NCBI RefSeq assembly: GCF_016433145.1
Contig: NC_058133.1
Span: forward strand, 478,672,689 to 478,736,688
Origin: Gracilinanus agilis
Taxonomy: Eukaryota
Direction of reading: 5' to 3'
Length of the DNA: 64,000 nt
Shown here: positions 981-63,639 of the stretch, one piece after another
How the letters are laid out: the number at the start of each line of letters is the position of its first letter
Position numbering within the stretch: the first letter of the stretch is position 1
The notes under the pieces: generated by a model
Database searches by the model: none
What the model was told of the DNA's origin: nothing
What the model saw: only the letters and a program-made list of their open reading frames with translations
Position numbers and translations under genes: made by a program

Positions 981-3900
981 CTCAATACATACTTAATAGA
1001 TTATATCTAGCAGAGGGTCATAGATTCATATGCTCTTCTCTTTTCTCATTTTATATACTGAAATGTTTGTGTTTGTTGATATTTTTGATGTTCACAATAA
1101 AAAATTTTAATATAAAAATGAGCATATATATAAAATTTAAATAAATTAAAATAAGTTTATAAAGAATATTAATAAATAATGATAAAATGAAATGAACTAA
1201 ATAAAATTTAATATGAAAATGAGCATATAATATAAAAATGAGATTATTTTTCTCTATTAAAGAATTTGTGGAAGATGTGTCTTACATTCCCTTGTGGTCA
1301 GTGGATTGGTTTATAGAATCCATTCTGGTCCTGGGGTAGGTCTGGATTGTGGCTCTTCTCTGTGACCAAAGCTGAGAGTCACTCTCTCTCTGTCTCATAT
1401 GTTGAGGCAAATGGGACATAGAGAGATCCAAGTGAATGTGGTGACCCAACGCAGGTGAAGCCTCAAGGAGTGTCCTCAACTAGACATGGAACTAAAGGTT
1501 AAATATTACCATAAACACAAAGAAACATTTTAGTCAAAACTGTACCTATTCATTCTCCCCTTCCTAACTTGGAAAGTCCCTAATATTTCATTCAATTAGA
1601 AATCAGATTATCTAATATTGTTGTTCCTTTAATTAATTGGCCTGATTTGATTGTTTTTAATGTATAAAAATACATCTCCCTCTTTCTCAGGGTCCAGTCC
1701 GAAGCTTAAGGAGGAGCTTGGTCCCAATTTGTTGGGCAATTGACATGCATTGCTTAATAAAATCAATATGATCAGAAGATCAAACCTTTGTTTCCTCAAT
1801 CATTTCATCTTTTGCTTGTTACATCAGGGCATCCTTGGGCAAGTCAGTCAACCATCTTCATCCTTGAAATCTGCTCTTCTTACTTTATCCAAAATATCTC
1901 CTGATCTCCTTCCTAGCCCTCGAGGATCTTTTCACGTGGAGGTTCAGTTGGCACTCAAACCCAAAACACCACAAGCACAGCTCATTATCTTCATTTTAAA
2001 TTTGCTTTCTTTTTCAGTTCTCTCCTTCCTTTGAGGGTTCTGTCATCCTTTCAGGTACCCTGGTTTGGAACTTCAGAGTCATTCTCAGCCTTCACCTACT
2101 ATATCTGGTCAAATCCTGTCAATTTTATTTCTATAGCATCCCTGGCCCCATCCCCTTTTTTCTCCTTTTAAATGGCTATCACTCTAATGTAGACCCTCCT
2201 CATTTCTCACCAGAACTATTGGAATATCTTTCTGATTGCTTACCTTGTCTGTCCAATGCCTTTATAGATTCTGTCTAATCCTTTCTTTATCCAGCTATTA
2301 AACTGGCATTCCTGAAGCATAGATCTGACCACTAGAGTTCAAGAGTCACCAGAGTTCAAGAAGCTCCAGTGTTTCTCTGTTGCTTCTAAAATCACATATA
2401 AAGCCATTTGTTTGGTATTTAATACTATTCAACAATCCTTTCTGAATGTTTCCTTGAATATGTCTGTCTGACTCCCTCTTTCTCTCTGTTTCTTTCTGTT
2501 TTTCTCTATATATGTCTGTCTCTATTTCTCTTCCTCTCTCTCTCTTTGTCTTTCTCTGTTTCTATCTTTATCTCTTTCTAACTCTGTCTCTATCTCTCTT
2601 CCTTTACTTTCACCTCCCCCTTCCTTTCCCTCACTGGACTTCTTTTTGATTGGAGAATCACAAGATATCTTCAGCCAATCCAAACACTTTCTGTCATCAC
2701 ACCTGTTCCTCCAAGAATATGTCTCATATAATCTAAAGTTTTGCATTGATTGGCTGCTTGAGTCTTGTTCTTATCTTAGCCACTTGATTTTTTTATTCAA
2801 TCAACAGTCTACCTTTATTTAAAAAAAAGATAGTATGTATATGAAAATATTCAACTTAATAAAATTTCATTTGGAAGCTAAAAGTGTCAGAGCCAGGACA
2901 AGATTTCATATGTGCTCATTCCAGATCATATTAGCCAATTTAGTAGAGATTCCTCCAACATTAAAAAAAATTGCTAGGTAACTGTTAAATCCACTGACTC
3001 CATGCAGAGGCCCAACTTAGCTAAGTTATATGCCATCATTCAGGTGGTGAAGATAGGATTTGAAACTAGTTATTCTGGTTCCTAGGGCAGCATTTTTCTT
3101 CAGCTGTCACATTATATAAAATAATTCCCATTCTAATGGACTCTTTCCTCATTCACTTTCCCTCTCCACTAAATTTCCATATCTCTTACATATATATTAT
3201 TTCCTGACTGTTCCCTGATAATATTACAGAATCATAGAATTTGATGGGGACCCCCAGGAGCCATTTGGTCTAAGATATACTTTGAAAGAAACCTTCTGTT
3301 TAATGACCTTCAAGGAGAGGAACCAATTGTCATTTGAGGGAACTGGTTCCAGTTTTGGCTGGCTCTATTTATTAGGAAGTTTTTCCTATTATCAAGCATT
3401 CCTTTGCCTCTTTATCTCTTCCACCCATTGCTCATGGCAGGCATAAATAGTACAAGTCTGATACCTCTTCCTCATACCCCACTCCTCAGATATTTGAATA
3501 CAGGTTAATGACATCCATGAACTTTTTTTCTCTTCTTACCAGCCATCCTCAAACTCATTCTTGAGTGACAGGAACTCTAGGTCCTTTCTCTTTTTAATTT
3601 CCCTCCTCTGAACATTATCCAGCTTCCCAATATTCTCCTCAAACTGTGGAGTTCAGAGTTGAACATAGTACTATCCTTATTCTGGAAGCTCTGCCTCTCA
3701 ATGTAGAACATTAGATATTTAGAGGTCCCATCAAGGTACTGACTCAAATTGAGATTGTAGCATATTTCAACTGCCATATTTTTTCTTCCAGAGCAAATGG
3801 TCTGTAACCAGTCCTCCTATATCTGGCATAATAGAAGAACTCCCCTTTATCAATTCTATTTCTCCTAAGAAAACCAAAACACACAAAACTTATGACTTGA

Positions 3901-4199
3901 AAAGGTTTTATTCTGAAGTATTTGTCCAACATCTGATGTTCTTGTAATCCAAGAGATGGCCTGAAGACTCAAGGATCCAGATCTTGCCTGCTAATAGAGG
4001 TCCCCATGGGGGATAAGTGTCCTCCAAAAATTCAAATACTACCAATAAATACCAAAAGGTGCCACCAAATAATTTACATAAATTAAATATCACTAAGATC
4101 TCAGGAACGCTAGACTCTGGGGAGATTGCTTCTGACTGTAGAATTCTTTTACTTGATCCATTTCTCTTTAAGATTCGTTGTCACAGGCTCCTTAGCCCC

Positions 4200-5535
4200 T
4201 CAGTTCAGCTCTGGATCATCTCTGTACTTTTGAACCCAGTCATCACTGGGGTTGGCACACACCTGCCGGCCCTTTTTGGTCTGGAAACTGTGGAGGAAAA
4301 GGAAAAGAGAGGAGATGAGAAGCCTAGGAGTTTTTTAGCTAGAGATGAACCAGAAGGTCTCTGTGCTTCCCTCTTCCCAACTTTCTCTTTATTTCTGGAA
4401 GGGATTAAGAAACACTCTCTTCTTTCTGAAACCTCATCAGGCTCATTGAGTCTAACTTTTGCTTTCTAGAGACATCCCCAGGAGAGATTATCTCAGTCTC
4501 TCCTTCCTGCCCTCAGATTCCTGTTGCTTCAGTTTATCCCTCTCCATTGGGAGGAGTTTCTCCTATCTTGCTCCTGGGAGAAGCAAATTTTGATATAGGA
4601 CTTACATGGGCTTTTGCTCTCCCTTGTATCCACAGTTGAGTTGCCCGATCTATACATTCTGCTAAATTGCCAAATGGCCCCATTTCCTCTTCCATCATCT
4701 CTCCCTAAGGGGACTAAAGTAAGTAGATACTCACACCACAGCTGGTTGAGAGCACAAGATGCTGGTCTCATAAAAGTCTGTCACAAATTTCCTAGGAATC
4801 TGTTTTCTGACATAAGAGAAGCAGCAGGATATAGGAGAATCAGAGCCCACTGTAAAAAAAAAAGGGGGGGGGGGAGTCGTGAGATTAGGACAGTCATATG
4901 TTCATACTATACATTCCTTAGATGCTGACCTACTCTTAGAGACATGCTTTTCTTCTGGCATAGTAGGGATGTCACCGCTCATGTTTCCCCTTAAGTGTCA
5001 GGTGTGATTCTCTGTGTATGGAGAGGAATCAGACCTGCTAATCCCATTCCCATCCATGCAAAAAAAAAAACAGGAAGAATTAGAGCCAGATGGGATGTCA
5101 GAGATCTACTCATCCAGTTCTTGACTTTTAAAGAGGAAGATTCTTGTCACAAGGGTAGTTAATGGCAGTCAGAACTAGAACCTAGCTAACCTAGCTGACC
5201 AGGCTATTGCTCTTTCCATCTCTTGTCCTGTCTTGATCTTACATGTTATATGCTAGTTAAGCAAATACTGTCAAAAGCACGTTGTTGCTTTCAAGTTCAA
5301 AAGGCATAAACCTTTCTGGTCCTGCTCCTCCCTTTCGGTCCTCCTTCTCTCCACTCTCACCAGATCTCATGATCTGACTGGGCTCACTCTCTGTCAGAGC
5401 TCTGTGCTACTTATGATCACAGCCTGGGCACATCCACAGAAAGCAGGAGAAAACTCACTTACTTGGTGCAGAAGATGCCAGAGAGGTGAACGCCATGACC
5501 ATAAGGATGGAGAGGGCAGCCACAGAGACTTTCAT
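4200..5535 (-). CDS. CCL4: CCL4-like CC chemokine, copy 1 (most divergent), 91 aa
   Basis: Exons 5463-5535, 4735-4849, 4200-4287 (73+115+88 nt), GT-AG introns. Protein [91 protein letters not shown]. Four Cys, CC motif. TATA 5624-5629, AATAAA 3907-3912. Confidence 0.93.
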
Positions 5536-5599
5536 GGTCCTGAGAGAAGAGAGGTTGGAGGAACAGAGCATAAGTTAAGAGGCTCTGGAGGTCTGTGTC

Positions 5600-5880
5600 T
5601 CTGTCTCATGTTTGGGACCTCTCTTTATAAGGGCCTCTGGGAATATCCAGAAAGATCAATGGAACAGAAAAGGAGTGGAAATTCCAGGGTTGAGCTGATG
5701 TCATGGTGGAAATTGGAAACTGAAAAGTGAGCCCAGGAAATGTAAGTCTGGTGCTAAAGACTGAGGTTCTCTTCCCCAATGCAGTTTCATCATGGGGGAA
5801 AGAGGAGGAGGGATAGAGAAAGGAGAAATGTATGTGTGGTAGAGTGGCAAAGGTGCTGAGGGGGAAGTGGTGAGCTTATA
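5600..5880 (-). promoter_or_regulatory. Copy 1 proximal promoter
   Basis: TATA 5624-5629; kB-like GGAAATTCC 5677-5685; CRE-like TGATGTCA 5696-5703; ISRE GAAACTGAAA 5716-5725; ETS CAGGAAAT ~5734; RUNX TGTGGT 5835-5840; PU.1-like GGGGAAGTG ~5861. Confidence 0.75.
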
Positions 5881-12040: not shown

Positions 12041-12815
12041 ATAGTTTAATTGTTAAGGATTTTTTCTTAATGTCAGGCCTAAATTAACCTTCCTACAAAT
12101 GCTGCCTACTATCCCATGTTCTATCCTTGGGCCAGTGAGCACAAATCTACATTCTTCCAAAGGAGAGATCTTCTAATACTAAAAGGCAGAAATCCTGTCT
12201 GACCTAGGTCTTCTATTCTCTCTGCTCACCATCTATAGTTTCTTCAACTCAACTCTAGGCACCTCACATCCTTGGCTGCCTTCGTCTTCTCAACAGAGAA
12301 GATGTGATTTTTGGCTTCCCTATCAACCTGTTGGCTCAAAGTGAGATGACAATCCACTGAACCCCCAGGGATTTTACAAAAATTTTGTTGGTTTAATGAT
12401 ACCACACCAATCTAGTATGAACATAACAGAATTCCATCTCCTAAATCCCTCTTCCCCAAGAACACTGAAACAACAGTGAGAAGATATGGTTTTAGAAAGT
12501 TTTATTCTGAAATCTTTGTCCAATAGACATCTGTGGAATCCATCAGGCAACCCCTGGACTCTAAGGAACAGAGGCTAGGTTGCTAATAGAAGTCCCCATA
12601 GGGGAAAAGTATCTTCCAGAAGTGGAATAGTACAAATAAATAAGTAAATCTGCTACCAAATAATTTACATAAGTTAAATATCACAGATAAAAATTAATTA
12701 TAATGGAGGAAAATATCTCAGAAAGGCTGAAGTCTCCAAAATTGTTTCTGACTATGGAATTCCTTAGCTTGGTCCATGTCCCTTGAAGATTCATAAGCCA
12801 AGGGCCCTGAACCCC

Positions 12816-15552: not shown

Positions 15553-18067
15553 ATGTAGTTCTTAACTATCTTAATGTAAGTTTGGACTGTGGCTTTCAGT
15601 GGCCAAAGCTTTCTTTTCTTCCCTGTTCTCCCTCTCTCATTCTTACTGATACCTAAAGTGAGGTCCATGAGATATAGAGAGATCCAAGGGAATATGGGGA
15701 ACCAATACAGACGGAAGCCACAGAGAATATGCCCTCAAAATGAACAAGAATGAAAGGTGCAATGAACAGAAACATCTCAGACACACCTCTGCTGGAAGGG
15801 TGGTGCCCTGGGAAAGGAGAGGAAAAGAGGTCTCACTACATTCTCTTGGCTCAAGAAGGAAGAGGAAGAGGAAACCACACCGAGGTCTAGGATTTTCCCT
15901 TAGCAGTAGGGAGCAAAAGAGGACTTCCTCTTTATCCCTTAAGTTTTGATCAAAAATGGGTATCCCACTCCCATGACAAGTCAGCTCAGATCTGGTGGAT
16001 TTCCTACTCTTTTCCCCTCCAGCAGAGGTAGTATTTTGTAGTAGAAAAGGGAATGAACTTAGAAGTCAGGAAAGCTTAATCCTGCCTTTGATACTTACCA
16101 ACAGTGTTCCTGGGGAGGTCACTTACTCATTCTCATCCTTTAAATACTATTAATTTCCTTCTGTAATCTCTTAAATTCTCTGAGTTTCACTGAATTTAAT
16201 CATTTAAAATTCATTTTTCATTTAAAAATCTTAGTTCCAAGGGATAAGGATAAGAGACATTCAGAAACAAAGGGAGCAAATTATCCTTCAACAACAATAG
16301 AATTAAATTGCAAAAGGAGACTGAGAAAAGTGCAGGCACATGTTCTGGACTTGTCTTTTTTATTTCTGGGGCCATTTTGAGAGCCTCTCAACTCTTAGGG
16401 ATATAAAAGCATTCACTCTCTATTCACTGTAGTGACCTTCTCAGTCAAGCCTGGTAAAGCAGACAGCATGGTGGCATGGAAATCATGGAACAGCTTTTGA
16501 ATCATACCTTGGACACTCATGCTCATAGGAAAATTAATTAATCTCTCAGAGTCCATTTCCTCATCCATCAAATGGGGACAATAATATTCCCTCTTCCCAC
16601 TTCACATAGGTAGTTGAGAGAAAAGTGCTTTGAAGACTTGCAAAACCCTTCAAAAACATTTTAGGAACAAGATTTCTGGACCACAGGATCAAGAATTTGG
16701 AGTTAGAAGGATCCTTAGAAGGCATCAAGTCCTCACAAAGTCTTTCAAATCTCCCTTGGGATTTTATCTCCCCAACAACCCTTGGCAGCAGGCAGTACAG
16801 GGAAAATTATAATACTACCCAGGACTACTACCCACTAATAAAAAATGACATATATTAACTATTAATCAACAGTCATTGCCTCACTAAAGCCCTTGACAAT
16901 TTAAAAAACATATTCTTTTGCCCTGGTATCTCACGTAAGCCTAGAAAGATTGAATGAATTGCCCAAGATCACACAGTTAATGCATGGCAGGGTCCTAGTG
17001 GGAATACCAAGGAAGACTGGATTATTTCAGGAATTTATACATACAATAGTTCATGGTCCTCACCATAATCCTGTGAGGTGACATGGCAGCAGGTAGTATC
17101 CTTCCTATATGACAAAGTACAAATGAGACAAACAGGTGACAGGGATTTGTCCGAGGCTTTGTATTAATTCACCATCCCCCTAGATTTCCTGTCTTCTATG
17201 GTAGAAAGTGTCATTTCCATGTTAGAGTTGGGAGAAACTAAATAAAGTACATTTATTAGTGATTTGAGCAAGGACATTCAGCCAGAGCTTCTGACATCTC
17301 AAAGAGAACCAAAGGGACAATGGGGAAGAGGAGGGGACAGAAAGAGATGAAGGGAGTCTATTGGGATGAGTTGGGTCTATCAGTGGAGATTGTAGGGTAG
17401 AGGACCAAGAGGTGGAAATGACCTTAGTGTTTTACCTCTCAGCAAGGAGGCCAGTGTCAGTGGAAGAAAAATATATGGAGGATAGTAAAATATTAAAACA
17501 GTAGGAAAGAAGGAGTCAGAGTGTTAAAGGCTTAAAAAGTCAGAGAATTTTATGTTCTATCCTGGAAGTGATAGGGAGCCACTGTAGTTTATTAAGTAGT
17601 GAGGTGACATGGTCAGACCAATTCTTTGGGAAGATCACATTGCCAGCTGAGGGAAGGATGGAGTAGAATGGGGGAATGTGGGAAAAGGAGATCAATCAAT
17701 AGGATATCATTACTTTAATTGATAAAGTCTGAGGATGAATTTTCTTGTTCTGCAGTTTAACCTTACTAAAATGCAGGCACTTAATTTTGTTTCATTCTCA
17801 AGCTAGAAAGTGTCTGAACTAAGACAAGAATTTGAATTTTGTGACTTGAAATTTTCTTATTGGTCAGTTTACTCTAAGTTTCTCTTTCATTTAAAAATAT
17901 ATTACTATTCTTGTTATATACACTGAATCCATCTAGATGTTTGGAATAGGTTAAGTGACTTGCCCGTGATCATACCAGTAGTGCCAGGATTTCTAGACAC
18001 TCTGATCCTAAATCAAGCTTCTTCTCTTCTGCCACAACTTAAAATAACTCATTCTCATTATTTTCCT

Positions 18068-18735: not shown

Positions 18736-19758
18736 ACAACATAGTCATCTATTCCAAAAAGGTAACTGAAAAAAAAAATCCCCCCTATCACAACCTTTAT
18801 AAATGGTCACCAAGTCTCAGTTTAAAGACCTCCAAGGGAGAGGCAATCATATTCCAGTTTGGACAGGTATAATTATTAAGAATTTTTTCCTATTGTCAAA
18901 TCTAAATTTATATGCTCACAAATTCCACCTCTACCCTTGGTGCTATCCTTGAGTTCCAAAGAGCCCAAATCTATACTATTTCACAGGACATACCATTTAG
19001 AACTTGAGGATTTGAATCATGCCTGACCTGAGTCTTCTCTTCTCCCCACTAATCAATCCCTCTAGTCCCTTCGCTTCATCCTCTTGGGGTTCTAGACACC
19101 TCATGTTCTTGGCTGCCTTCCTCTGAACATTCTCCAGTTTCCCTATATTCTTCTTAAACTGTGGGTACCAGAAATGACCACAATACTTATCAGTTTGGTT
19201 TCCTCAGATAAGAACAGTAGGACTATTGCCCCTTGATTCCAGGAACCTTGCTTCTCCACAGAGAAGATGTCATTTTTGGCTTACCCATCAACCTACTGAC
19301 TCAAAGTGAGATGGAAGCCCACCTAACCCACAGAGCTATTACAGAAACTTTGTTGTCTAATGTTGTCACACCCATCTGGTATGATAACAGCACAACTCCC
19401 ACTTCCCAACCCTCATGCTCAAGAACATTGAAACCACAACAAATAGATATGGTTTTTAAATTTTATTCTGAAATTTTTGTTCATTAGACATTCATTGAAT
19501 ACATCAGGTTACTCAAAGAACTTTAAGAAAGAGAGACTAGGCTGGTAATGGAGGTCCCCATAGGGGACAGATGTCTTCCAGAAGTGCAAATAGTATGAAA
19601 CAATACCCAGAGCTGCCACCAAATAATTTACATTATTTACATAAATTTACATGAATCTTATAGATAAAAAGGAGTTATAATGGGGGAGAAGTCTTATGAC
19701 TGTGGGATTAGTTTGGTCCCTGTCTTTTTAAAGTTCATTGGCTAAGGTCCTGAGCCCC

Positions 19759-30830: not shown

Positions 30831-31844
30831 CATTTATACCTAAAGGTAACTGAAAAAAATTCCCCATTATCACATCCTTTGTTTAAAGACCTCCAAGGGA
30901 AAGGGAACTAACTACAACTTGAGACAACCCATTCCAGTTTGGGCAGGCATAATTGTTAAGAATGTTTTCCTAATGTTGAGTCTAAATTTAGATCTTCACA
31001 AATTTCACCTCTTGGATCTATCCTTGGACCCCAGAGAGCACAAATCGACACTATTTCATAGGACAAATCTTCCAGTACTTGGAGAAAAGAATCATACTTG
31101 ACCTAGGTCTTCTTTTCTCCCCACTAGCCACCCTTAGTTCCTTCACCTCATCTTCTAGTGACTCTAGATACCTAATGTTCTTGGATGCTTTCCTCTTCCA
31201 GCTTCCCAATAGTCTTCTTAAACTGTGGATAACAAAATGACTACCATACTACCATTTGGTCTTTTTAGACCTGAAGAATAGGACTGTTGCCTCTCTTTTA
31301 CTAGAAGCTTGCTTCTCAACACAGGAAAACATTTCATTTTTGGCTTACCCATTGCCCTGCTGATTCAAAGTGAGATGGCAGTCCAGCTAACCCACAGAGC
31401 TATTATAGAAACTTGGTTGTCTAATACTGCCACACCCATCTGATTTAAAAATAGAACTCCAACTCCCCCAACACCTCATCTCCAAAGAACATGGAAAACA
31501 GAGTAAAAATATATGATTTTAAAACTTTTTTTTATTTTGGAATCTTTGTCCATTAGACATTCATAGAATCCAGTAGGCAACCCAAAGGATTCTAAGGAAA
31601 AGAGAATAGGCTGGTAATGAGGGTCCCCACTAGGGACAAATGTCTTCCAGAAGTGCAAATAGTGCAATCAAATACCCAAAGCTGCTACAAAATAATTTAA
31701 ATGAACTAAATATCACAGATAAAAAGGAATTATAATGGGGAGAAGATCTCAGGAAAGCTGGAGTCACAGAGATTAAATCTGACTGCAGAATTTCTTAGCT
31801 TGGTCTGTGTTCCATGAGGATTAATTGGCAAGGTCCTGAGCCTC

Positions 31845-41828: not shown

Positions 41829-43153
41829 CTAATGATTCTTGGTACAATTCATATGAAGTATCTATTTGTGTCCCATACTCTGACAATATCCCAGAATCAA
41901 AGAATTTGAGTTTTCAAAGGAACCATAGTCATTTACTCCAAAAAGTGAATGAAAGGAGCAGCTAGGTAGCACAATGGATAGAGCATTAGGTTTGGAGTTG
42001 GAAGGATCTGCATTCAAATTTAGTCTCAGATACTTTTTGTCTGTGTGTGACCCTGGGCAAGTCATTTAACCCTGATTGCTTAGCCCTTACCACTCGTCTA
42101 TCTTACAATTGATACTAAAATAAAAGGTAAGGGTTAAAAACTGACTAAAAGAAATCCCCACTATTACATGTTTTGTAGGTGACACCCAGCCTCTGTTTAA
42201 ACACCTCCAAGAAAGGAGAAATCATTCAGAGCTGGAAGCAGTTCATTCCAGTTTGGAGATCTATAATCAGTTTTTCCTGGTGTCAAGTCTAAATTTATCT
42301 CCTCGCAATGCCATCCATTACTCCTGATTCTGTCCTTGGGGTCCCAAAAGAACAAATCTACCCTCTTCCAAAGGACAGACCTTCTGATACTTAAAGACAG
42401 AAATCATGTCTGACCTGAGTCTTCTCTTCTCTCCATTAAACATCTCAAGGTCCTTCAACTCATCCTCTTGTGACAAGGCATTTTAAGTCTTTAGTTGCCT
42501 CCTCTTCCCATTTTCCAGCTTCCCAAAGGTCTTCATTAATTGTAGTTCCCAAAACTGACCAAAATATTCTGCATATTGCCTGACCAGATCCTACAACAGT
42601 AGCACTATTGCCTCTCTATTCCTGGAAGCTTGCTTTTCAACACAATTTTTTTTTCCGGCTTCCCCATCACCCTGCTGACTCAAAGTGAAATGACCATCCA
42701 CTGAACCCCCAGAGCTCTTACAGAAACATTGTCTACTGAGGTCACACCCTTCTCACATGAAAATGTAGAACCCTTCTCCCCAATCTCTTTTCCCTTGAGA
42801 AAACAGAAACCATGATGAAAAGATACGGCTTTAAAATGTTTTATTCTGAAGTCTTTTTCCAAAAGATGTTCATCAAATTCAGCAGGTAGCCCTAGCACTC
42901 AAAAGAATGTACGCTTGGTTACTACTAGGAGTCCCCATGGGGGACAGATATCCTCTAGAAGTGCAAATTGTGCCAATAAATATCCAAAACTGCCACCAAT
43001 AACTTAAATAAATTAGATCTCACTGGCAAAGTGAATTATTATGTGAATTATGATTAGTAAATCTTCAGTCCTGGGAGATTTCATCCAAGAGCAGAGTTTT
43101 TTTGGTTTGGATCCTTTTTCTTTAGGATTCATTGATCAGGGCCCCTGAGCTCC

Positions 43154-62569: not shown

Positions 62570-63639
62570 AGATAACCCTAACTTTTATGACTCCAGCTGT
62601 CTTCTGGAATGTTCCCTGACTTTAATTTAAAATACTCGATCATATTTAATGTTTATAATTTATTTCCAGTGTTGACTTGTGTTATTTATTGGACATTTGT
62701 GGCCGTTCTCACCCTCCATTTCCCTGACTCTTCTCCATCACATTGATGGCTAATCTCATGGTGCTAGTATTTGTATGATATTGTGACAAAGTGACTATTT
62801 CTCCTGAATATCTACTATGAGCCATGGCTTTCTTTAACCCAAAACCCTTAAAGAGAATAAAGATGTATTTTTAAAATAAATAAAGCTGCATTGGATTAAC
62901 TGTGAAGTTATCTTTTATTTCTTTTTCTAATGGAACGTTGAACAAATTGCTTCACCTTCCTGAGCCTTGATTTACTCATATGTAAAATAAAAGTACTGGA
63001 CTGGATTGTTTTCCCTGGTCACAGGTCTGCTTCAATGTCTTCACTTTGTAAAATGACGGTTATTAGACTAAATTTCTTCCCTTTCCAAAGGTTTCAGTTT
63101 CCTCGTCTGGAATATGCAGGTGTTGGACCACATGGTTCCTGAGATCCCTTCTAGCTCTTCATTGATGAGTCTAAAATCCAGCCCTTTTCCTCTCTCTGCA
63201 GCTGCCTCTAAGTTTCCAATTGAAACTGCTCCTGCTGAAATGGGCAGAAGAGTTAGAGAAGAAAATGCAATGAGGTTGGGAGCATTTTCTGAGGATATCC
63301 CTAAGGATCACAGAGAGAGTAGATATAGGGGCTGAGAAAGAGTCTTGAAATTTGAAAGCATGATGAGTATAGAAAAAGGAAATTCTATGAGCTCTCCTAG
63401 GAAAGAAAAACTCAGAATGGGATGAATTGCTCACCTTGATGTGTTTCTGTTTCTAGAACTCTGTCTTCCAAGGAAGACAGCCAGTGCTTAGCCAACCCCA
63501 AAGAGGTCTGGGTCCAAAGATTGCCATTTAGCTAAAACAGGAAAACAAGTAAGGTATGCACCGAGCCCCCCAACTTTCCCCCACACCCCTAAAAAGCAAC
63601 TCTACACAAATGCTAAATGTTTTGCAGAAGAAATCTGGA

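Follow-up and report, generated by a model that had tools for sequence, protein, structure and literature searches.

A deeply conserved YRY-triloop hairpin in the 3'UTR of therian CCL4, a probable Regnase-1/Roquin decay element

The window, by which we mean the whole 64,000-nucleotide stretch of Gracilinanus agilis contig NC_058133.1 that was analysed, contains five tandem CCL4-like genes on its minus strand and a CCL3-like gene on the plus strand, near 61.5-62.6 kb. CCL4 (MIP-1beta), a ligand of CCR5, ranks among the major inflammatory chemokines. Each of the five CCL4-like copies has three exons with canonical splice sites and an intact reading frame of 91 amino acids, and a protein search found the proteins of copies 3 and 5 to be identical to two Gracilinanus agilis C-C motif chemokine 4-like proteins. 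The 3'UTRs of these opossum paralogues are approximately 70-73% identical to each other, with a mean column identity of 74%, and share a common layout in which a short hairpin lies 3' of the AUUUA cluster, at a distance of 187-211 nt from the stop codon. Between the hairpin and AAUAAA lie about 87-89 nt in each of the five opossum copies, a nearly constant spacing, and 63-74 nt in the eutherians examined. Coordinates of all features are given in Table 1.

Table 1. Positions in the window of the CCL4-like first exons, 3'UTRs and hairpins, and of the CCL3-like hairpin. Hairpins are written 5' to 3' on the mRNA strand.
Feature	Position	Strand	Remarks
CCL4-like copy 1, exon 1 start	5535	-	
CCL4-like copy 2, exon 1 start	14171	-	
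CCL4-like copy 3, exon 1 start	21428	-	
CCL4-like copy 4, exon 1 start	33216	-	
CCL4-like copy 5, exon 1 start	44465	-	
Copy 1 3'UTR	3907..4202	-	stop codon 4200-4202, AAUAAA 3907-3912, AUUUA motifs 4046-4088
Copy 2 3'UTR, stop codon to AAUAAA	12501..12818	-	AUUUA motifs 12637-12679
Copy 3 3'UTR, stop codon to AAUAAA	19462..19761	-	
Copy 4 3'UTR, stop codon to AAUAAA	31531..31847	-	
Copy 5 3'UTR, stop codon to AAUAAA	42840..43156	-	
Copy 1 hairpin, UCCCC-CAU-GGGGA	4001..4013	-	5 bp; A/C at the sixth position unpaired; pairing probability 0.97-0.99 in the full-UTR fold
Copy 2 hairpin, UCCCC-UAU-GGGGA	12593..12605	-	5 bp; pairing probability 0.82-0.97 in the full-UTR fold
Copy 3 hairpin, GUCCCC-UAU-GGGGAC	19554..19568	-	6 Watson-Crick bp; pairing probability 0.98-1.00
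Copy 4 altered hairpin, GUCCCU-AGU-GGGGAC	31623..31637	-	U·G closing pair, non-YRY loop; pairing probability 0.67-0.84
Copy 5 hairpin, GUCCCC-CAU-GGGGAC	42931..42945	-	6 Watson-Crick bp; pairing probability 0.98-1.00
CCL3-like 3'UTR hairpin, CCAUCA-CAU-UGAUGG	62735..62749	+	6 Watson-Crick bp, CAU triloop; pair probability 0.64

The pattern TCCCCYRYGGGGA has exactly four matches in the window, all on the minus (mRNA) strand (4001-4013, 12593-12605, 19555-19567 and 42932-42944). Window shuffles give an expectation of 0.01 such matches, although the four cannot be counted as independent events, because the copies in the window are paralogues; conservation across species is the real test. An earlier sequence-only reading of this stretch had placed the same four hairpins on the mRNA strand, with a six-pair stem in copies 3 and 5, and had located them between the AU-rich element and AATAAA in UTRs that are otherwise clearly diverged. 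Mapping of the UTRs and the identity between them bear out all of these points. That reading had also held that the stem is kept while the loop only alternates between CAU and UAU, which is true of copies 1, 2, 3 and 5 but not of copy 4, which it had omitted and whose core reads UCCCU-AGU-GGGGA.

Two candidate RNA runs with coverage over positions 3700-5600 were rejected as evidence of transcription, as their reads covered introns, were about 94% identical to the window and had loose ends at GATC junctions, as found in Hi-C data. These runs are genomic DNA of a related species that is approximately 6% diverged. In the DNA of this relative, the hairpin of copy 1 is unchanged, as are about 10 nt to either side of it.

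In order to compare the element between species, we retrieved CCL4 loci from 11 other non-primate mammals by a protein search for CCL4 orthologues, primates being left out. The comparison comprised 16 therian 3'UTRs (the five opossum copies, one from the Tasmanian devil, two Dromiciops paralogues and eight from eutherians), representing three marsupial and eight eutherian species. The hairpin is found in all 16 of these UTRs, in altered form in opossum copy 4, and always at the same relative position. Besides Gracilinanus agilis, its marsupial carriers are the Tasmanian devil and both Dromiciops paralogues, and its eutherian carriers are rat, Mus pahari, rabbit, zebra/horse, elephant, mink, a molossid bat and a shrew. 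The sequence-only reading had named a lack of conservation in eutherians as an outcome that would speak against its proposal; the hairpin is present in all eight eutherian species examined, and that of rabbit is letter-for-letter equal to the sequence which the same reading had proposed for human CCL4. The CCL4 UTR of one bird, the pigeon, contains no block homologous to the hairpin and no YRY triloop that is predicted to form.

Within the 16-UTR alignment, the 13-nt hairpin is the best conserved window of its length between marsupials and eutherians, with an identity of 0.886 as compared to a UTR mean of 0.33; the next-best windows correspond to the poly(A) signal (0.61) and the AU-rich core (0.58). 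Parsimony reconstruction assigns 0.77 changes per site to the hairpin versus 2.68 in other well-aligned columns, which is the lowest value among the 86 fully occupied windows and means that the hairpin evolves 3.5-fold slower than the remaining UTR.

A tree of the 16 UTRs groups opossum copy 5 with the devil sequence and Dromiciops 1, and opossum copies 2-4 with Dromiciops 2. This topology, taken from a tree without support values, suggests that the hairpin has been held in separate paralogue lineages since before the split between American and Australasian marsupials, and likewise that the tandem CCL4 array is older than this split. As a separate observation, a second match to CCCC-N3-GGGG lies about 2.9 kb upstream of equid CCL4 (zebra/horse; positions 90-100 and 84-94 of the fetched loci).

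The secondary structure was analysed in an alignment of 54 columns that includes the hairpin with its 20-nt flanks in the 16 sequences. RNAalifold predicts the six-pair hairpin as the sole consensus structure, and 97.9% of the alignment cells are paired in it, a fraction that drops to 37-66% when the 3' partner is shifted by one to three columns. Six substitutions have occurred in the five core pairs, and all six preserve pairing. The murid ancestor underwent a double change from C-G to U-A in the third pair, an independent double change of the same kind took place in the second pair of Dromiciops copy 2, and single C to U changes produced a U·G pair, which is the third pair in the devil and the closing pair in opossum copy 4. 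At the sixth position, most marsupials have G-C, eutherians have G·U, and mink has A-U. Both G-to-A changes in the 3' arm face a C-to-U change in the 5' arm, which by a rough estimate would happen in about 1 of 16 cases under random placement. The wobble pairs would fit only an RNA of the sense strand, and neither an antisense transcript nor a DNA palindrome.

The observed covariation score or percentage paired was reached in 5 of 500 shuffles, and the observed number of double-changed pairs in 89 of 500, only two independent double changes being seen. In the covariation analysis that the sequence-only reading had proposed, compensatory and wobble changes do keep the stem, and formal covariation support is modest. 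As we read these alignments, the structural case is built on conservation together with pairing-preserving change, and not on covariation statistics alone. When complete UTRs are folded, the hairpin is part of the minimum free energy (MFE) structure in 12 of 16 cases, with pair probabilities of 0.67-1.00. In rabbit it falls outside the MFE structure, yet its pairs have probabilities of about 0.9, and in zebra, elephant and bat it loses to long-range alternatives, with a probability of 0.00-0.29. Global folds of 300 nt are weak evidence and would count little for or against the hairpin. A competing pairing with an upstream segment (GGACA...UGUCC), which is available in some eutherians, was rejected as it is not conserved in marsupials. 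On the comparative evidence, we conclude that the CCL4 element is a genuine and strongly constrained RNA hairpin.

The rules for recognition of such hairpins by Roquin have been described in PMC6294493. The TNF-derived Roquin CDE, as quoted there, consists of a YRY triloop, three Y-R pairs in the upper stem and a 3' purine stack, and its recognition is essentially shape-specific, with stability and sequence of the stem being unimportant. Stems of 6-8 bp perform best and those of 5 bp are weaker, conserved CDEs strongly favour U at loop position 3 (with a preference for YAU in CSF3), and a single CDE causes modest repression of a reporter (PMC6294493). Regnase-1 targets the same class of elements, YRY triloop stem-loops in the 3'UTR, according to PMC13732794 and PMC11197792. 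The general premise of the sequence-only reading, that Roquin and Regnase-1 recognise stems with Py-Pu-Py triloops in cytokine 3'UTRs, agrees with PMC6294493 and PMC13732794; its reservation that the CCL4 stem is more GC-rich than a classic CDE carries no weight, given that stem stability and sequence are unimportant for recognition.

The CCL4 hairpins follow these rules closely. Fifteen of the 16 sequences have a CAU or UAU loop, the AGU loop of opossum copy 4 being the sole exception, and U occupies loop position 3 in all 16, as in high-confidence CDEs. Only pyrimidines make up the 5' arm and only purines the 3' arm. The upper stem consists of three C-G pairs, with U-A as the third from the loop in murids, in 14 of the 16 sequences; devil and copy 4 have a U·G pair among the three. 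The stem has 5-6 Watson-Crick pairs, and up to 7 pairs with wobbles in eutherians, as compared to the approximately 5-8 bp of CDE stems. Folding probability, for which high-confidence CDEs (Braun et al. 2018) are required to exceed 5%, is above 0.05 in 15 of 16 UTRs and 0.00 in zebra. Evolutionary conservation, a further mark of high-confidence CDEs, extends here across therians. By its sequence, the CCL4 hairpin conforms to the original TNF-derived CDE consensus. It also agrees with the definition of a Regnase-1 stem-loop, as a YRY triloop located in the 3'UTR, 187-211 nt past the stop codon. The U-rich hexaloop that defines the ADE is absent, as the CCL4 loop has three nucleotides, and a scan of the copy 1 UTR against Rfam 15 returned no model matching the hairpin, even at E values up to 10.

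The relaxed CDE pattern of Braun et al. 2018 (6-8 bp, no G·U, YRN) is a narrower net for these sequences. Opossum copies 3 and 5, both Dromiciops paralogues and mink fit it, and opossum copies 1 and 2 (5 bp), devil (internal U·G) and most eutherians (G·U as sixth pair) fall outside. CCL4, CCL3 and CCL4L2 are absent from the target tables of PMC6294493; for CCL4 this is probably because most eutherian stems, with 5 bp and a G·U pair, miss the relaxed search pattern.

Copy 4 is the only one of the 16 therian sequences with a loop outside the YRY consensus, and its AGU loop can alternatively be read as a pentaloop. Since a wobble closing pair, a pentaloop or the loss of Y at loop position 1 weakens a CDE (PMC6294493), the copy 4 hairpin is predicted to be weakened or inactive. 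Its reading frame is still intact, and this copy may represent a natural variant with weakened decay.

Published work on mouse Ccl4 connects the gene to Regnase-1. The smartSHAPE study of 2021 (PMC11197792) used in-vivo SHAPE data to predict a YRY stem-loop in mouse Ccl4, found that a reporter with this stem-loop is repressed by Regnase-1 in HeLa cells, and observed raised Ccl4 in Reg1 knockout macrophages (iBMDMs) after LPS. Ccl4 mRNA is also raised in M-Mcpip1-/- mice, which carry a myeloid knockout of Mcpip1 (PMC5721545), and CCL4 is listed among Regnase-1 targets in a review (PMC13316391). In TTP iCLIP, Ccl4 ranks among the top 3'UTR targets (PMC5009735), in agreement with a parallel action of the adjacent AU-rich element. 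The published mouse element is very probably the orthologue of the opossum hairpin, since folding of the rat and Mus pahari UTRs predicts this hairpin and no other YRY triloop with at least 4 bp. Our literature searches found no Roquin binding or CLIP data on CCL4 and no discussion of the deep conservation of its hairpin; two further papers, PMC9440930 (nucleolar decay) and PMC11026697 (MCPIP1, stellate cells), mention CCL4 and have nothing on the hairpin.

We consider it likely that the CCL4 hairpin is a constitutive-decay-type element, read by Regnase-1/Roquin, that keeps CCL4 expression short-lived together with the AU-rich element. In the proposed mechanism, 13-15 nt of the CCL4 mRNA fold into a stem of 5-6 bp with a pyrimidine 5' arm, a purine 3' arm and a C/U-A-U triloop. 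The endonuclease Regnase-1 would recognise the shape of this triloop hairpin and cut the mRNA while it is translated, and the ROQ domain of Roquin-1/2 would recognise the hairpin and recruit CCR4-NOT deadenylation and decapping. The hairpin would act jointly with the upstream AU-rich element bound by TTP, resulting in short-lived CCL4 expression. By extension from mouse and from the consensus, the opossum hairpins would be bound by Regnase-1/Roquin as well. The proposal of a candidate Roquin/Regnase-1 decay element, with which the sequence-only reading had started, thereby gains support from the fit to the consensus, from conservation and from the mouse Ccl4 reporter of PMC11197792.

Structural conservation by itself names no reader protein, and the hairpin could be a selected RNA structure that is read by another stem-loop-binding factor, such as an Arid5a-type stabiliser competing with Regnase-1, or a translational repressor. 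The latter would explain why translation of Ccl4 mRNA is held back in resting macrophages until LPS relieves the repression (PMC4063670), and the absence of CCL4 from the Roquin target tables of PMC6294493 also speaks for another reader. We regard another reader as rather unlikely, as loop and stem match the YRY/CDE rules closely and the Ccl4 YRY stem-loop reporter responds to Regnase-1 (PMC11197792). Roquin and Regnase-1 are themselves able to repress translation, so that the two readings overlap.

It is improbable that the constraint acts on the primary sequence, either as a site for a microRNA or a single-strand RNA-binding protein or as a DNA palindrome for a dimeric transcription factor. 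As most stem positions do not vary, they are uninformative on pairing, and TCCCC-N3-GGGGA is a DNA palindrome whose palindromy would also survive a double change from C-G to T-A. The double changes in murids and Dromiciops would destroy a seed or a linear motif, yet pairing is kept in both. The U·G pairs of devil and copy 4 and the G·U sixth pair of eutherians break DNA palindromy and antisense pairing while keeping pairing in the sense RNA, and the loss of pairing upon a shift of the 3' partner (from 98% to the range given above) also argues for a fold. Individual DNA sites, namely NF-kB, EBF and AP-2-like motifs, were rejected because the order and spacing of their half-sites do not fit, and the wobble pairs favour RNA.

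Finally, the non-independence of the four paralogous window copies would be compatible with a motif that has no function and is repeated through recent duplication or gene conversion, but with paralogue UTRs only about 70% identical, the hairpin kept in eutherians and, among marsupials, in at least two paralogue lineages whose members from different species cluster together, and its 3.5-fold slower evolution, the comparative data effectively refute this reading, to which we assign next to no probability.

The proposed decay-type element in the CCL4 genes has a possible counterpart in the CCL3-like gene of the window. A hairpin with a CAU triloop is located between the AU-rich region of that gene and AAUAAA, and its stem is unrelated to the CCL4 stem. 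Shuffling the dinucleotides of the CCL3-like UTR 5000 times yields such a hairpin in 62 cases (about 1.2%), and only six such hairpins are found on both strands of the whole window. In Dromiciops gliroides, a third CCL4-like gene has an internal 3'UTR deletion of about 230 nt, through which both the AU-rich element and the hairpin are gone (locus positions 17184-17260); the distal UTR and AAUAAA are retained despite the deletion.

We tentatively raise the possibility, which we regard as somewhat doubtful, that the succession of AU-rich element, YAU-triloop hairpin and poly(A) signal forms a module ancestral to the MIP-1 (CCL3/CCL4) family, more than approximately 160 million years old, and that the degraded marsupial copies are escape variants. 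If this were the case, the CCL3-like gene would have kept the shape of the hairpin while the sequence of its stem changed completely, and opossum copy 4 and the third Dromiciops gene would have subfunctionalised the array by means of mRNA stability, not protein sequence.

The most constrained piece of the therian CCL4 3'UTR is a YRY-triloop hairpin. Its conservation gives evolutionary backing to what has been a single reporter-level claim of Ccl4 as a direct target of Regnase-1, and shows exactly which nucleotides to mutate. The marsupial array offers natural variants, including U-A for C-G swaps, wobble pairs, a non-YRY loop and a full deletion, that are useful for testing the recognition rules of Regnase-1 and Roquin. 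The class of element is well described and the mouse Ccl4 target has been published (PMC11197792); new here are the therian-wide depth of conservation, the compensatory changes, the loss variants in marsupials and the CAU-triloop hairpin of the CCL3-like gene. The result adds to known biology rather than establishing a new kind of element.

Among known systems, the closest is the mouse Ccl4 stem-loop of PMC11197792, which belongs to the same gene family and is likewise a YRY triloop stem-loop in the 3'UTR. The murid form, UGUCUCC-CAU-GGAGAUG in rat and Mus pahari, has U-A where the opossum stem has C-G. Stem-rescue mutants in that study concern the Reg1 element and not the Ccl4 hairpin, and its scope includes neither Roquin nor deep conservation. 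The TNF CDE shares with the CCL4 hairpin a YRY triloop, a C-G closing pair, a Y-R upper stem, a 3' purine stack, a stem of 5-8 bp and a location in a cytokine 3'UTR near an AU-rich element; it differs in having a UGU loop and a stem rich in U-A, whereas CCL4 has a C/U-A-U loop and a stem made almost entirely of C-G pairs. The stem-loop destabilising element/CDE of CSF3 (G-CSF) is similar in its YAU-type triloop and as a single hairpin beside an AU-rich element in the mRNA of a myeloid cytokine, but its closing pair is A-U and its stem sequence is unrelated. The ADE of Ox40 is also a 3'UTR hairpin recognised by Roquin (PMC5603727), and is set apart from the CCL4 element by a U-rich hexaloop in place of the triloop.
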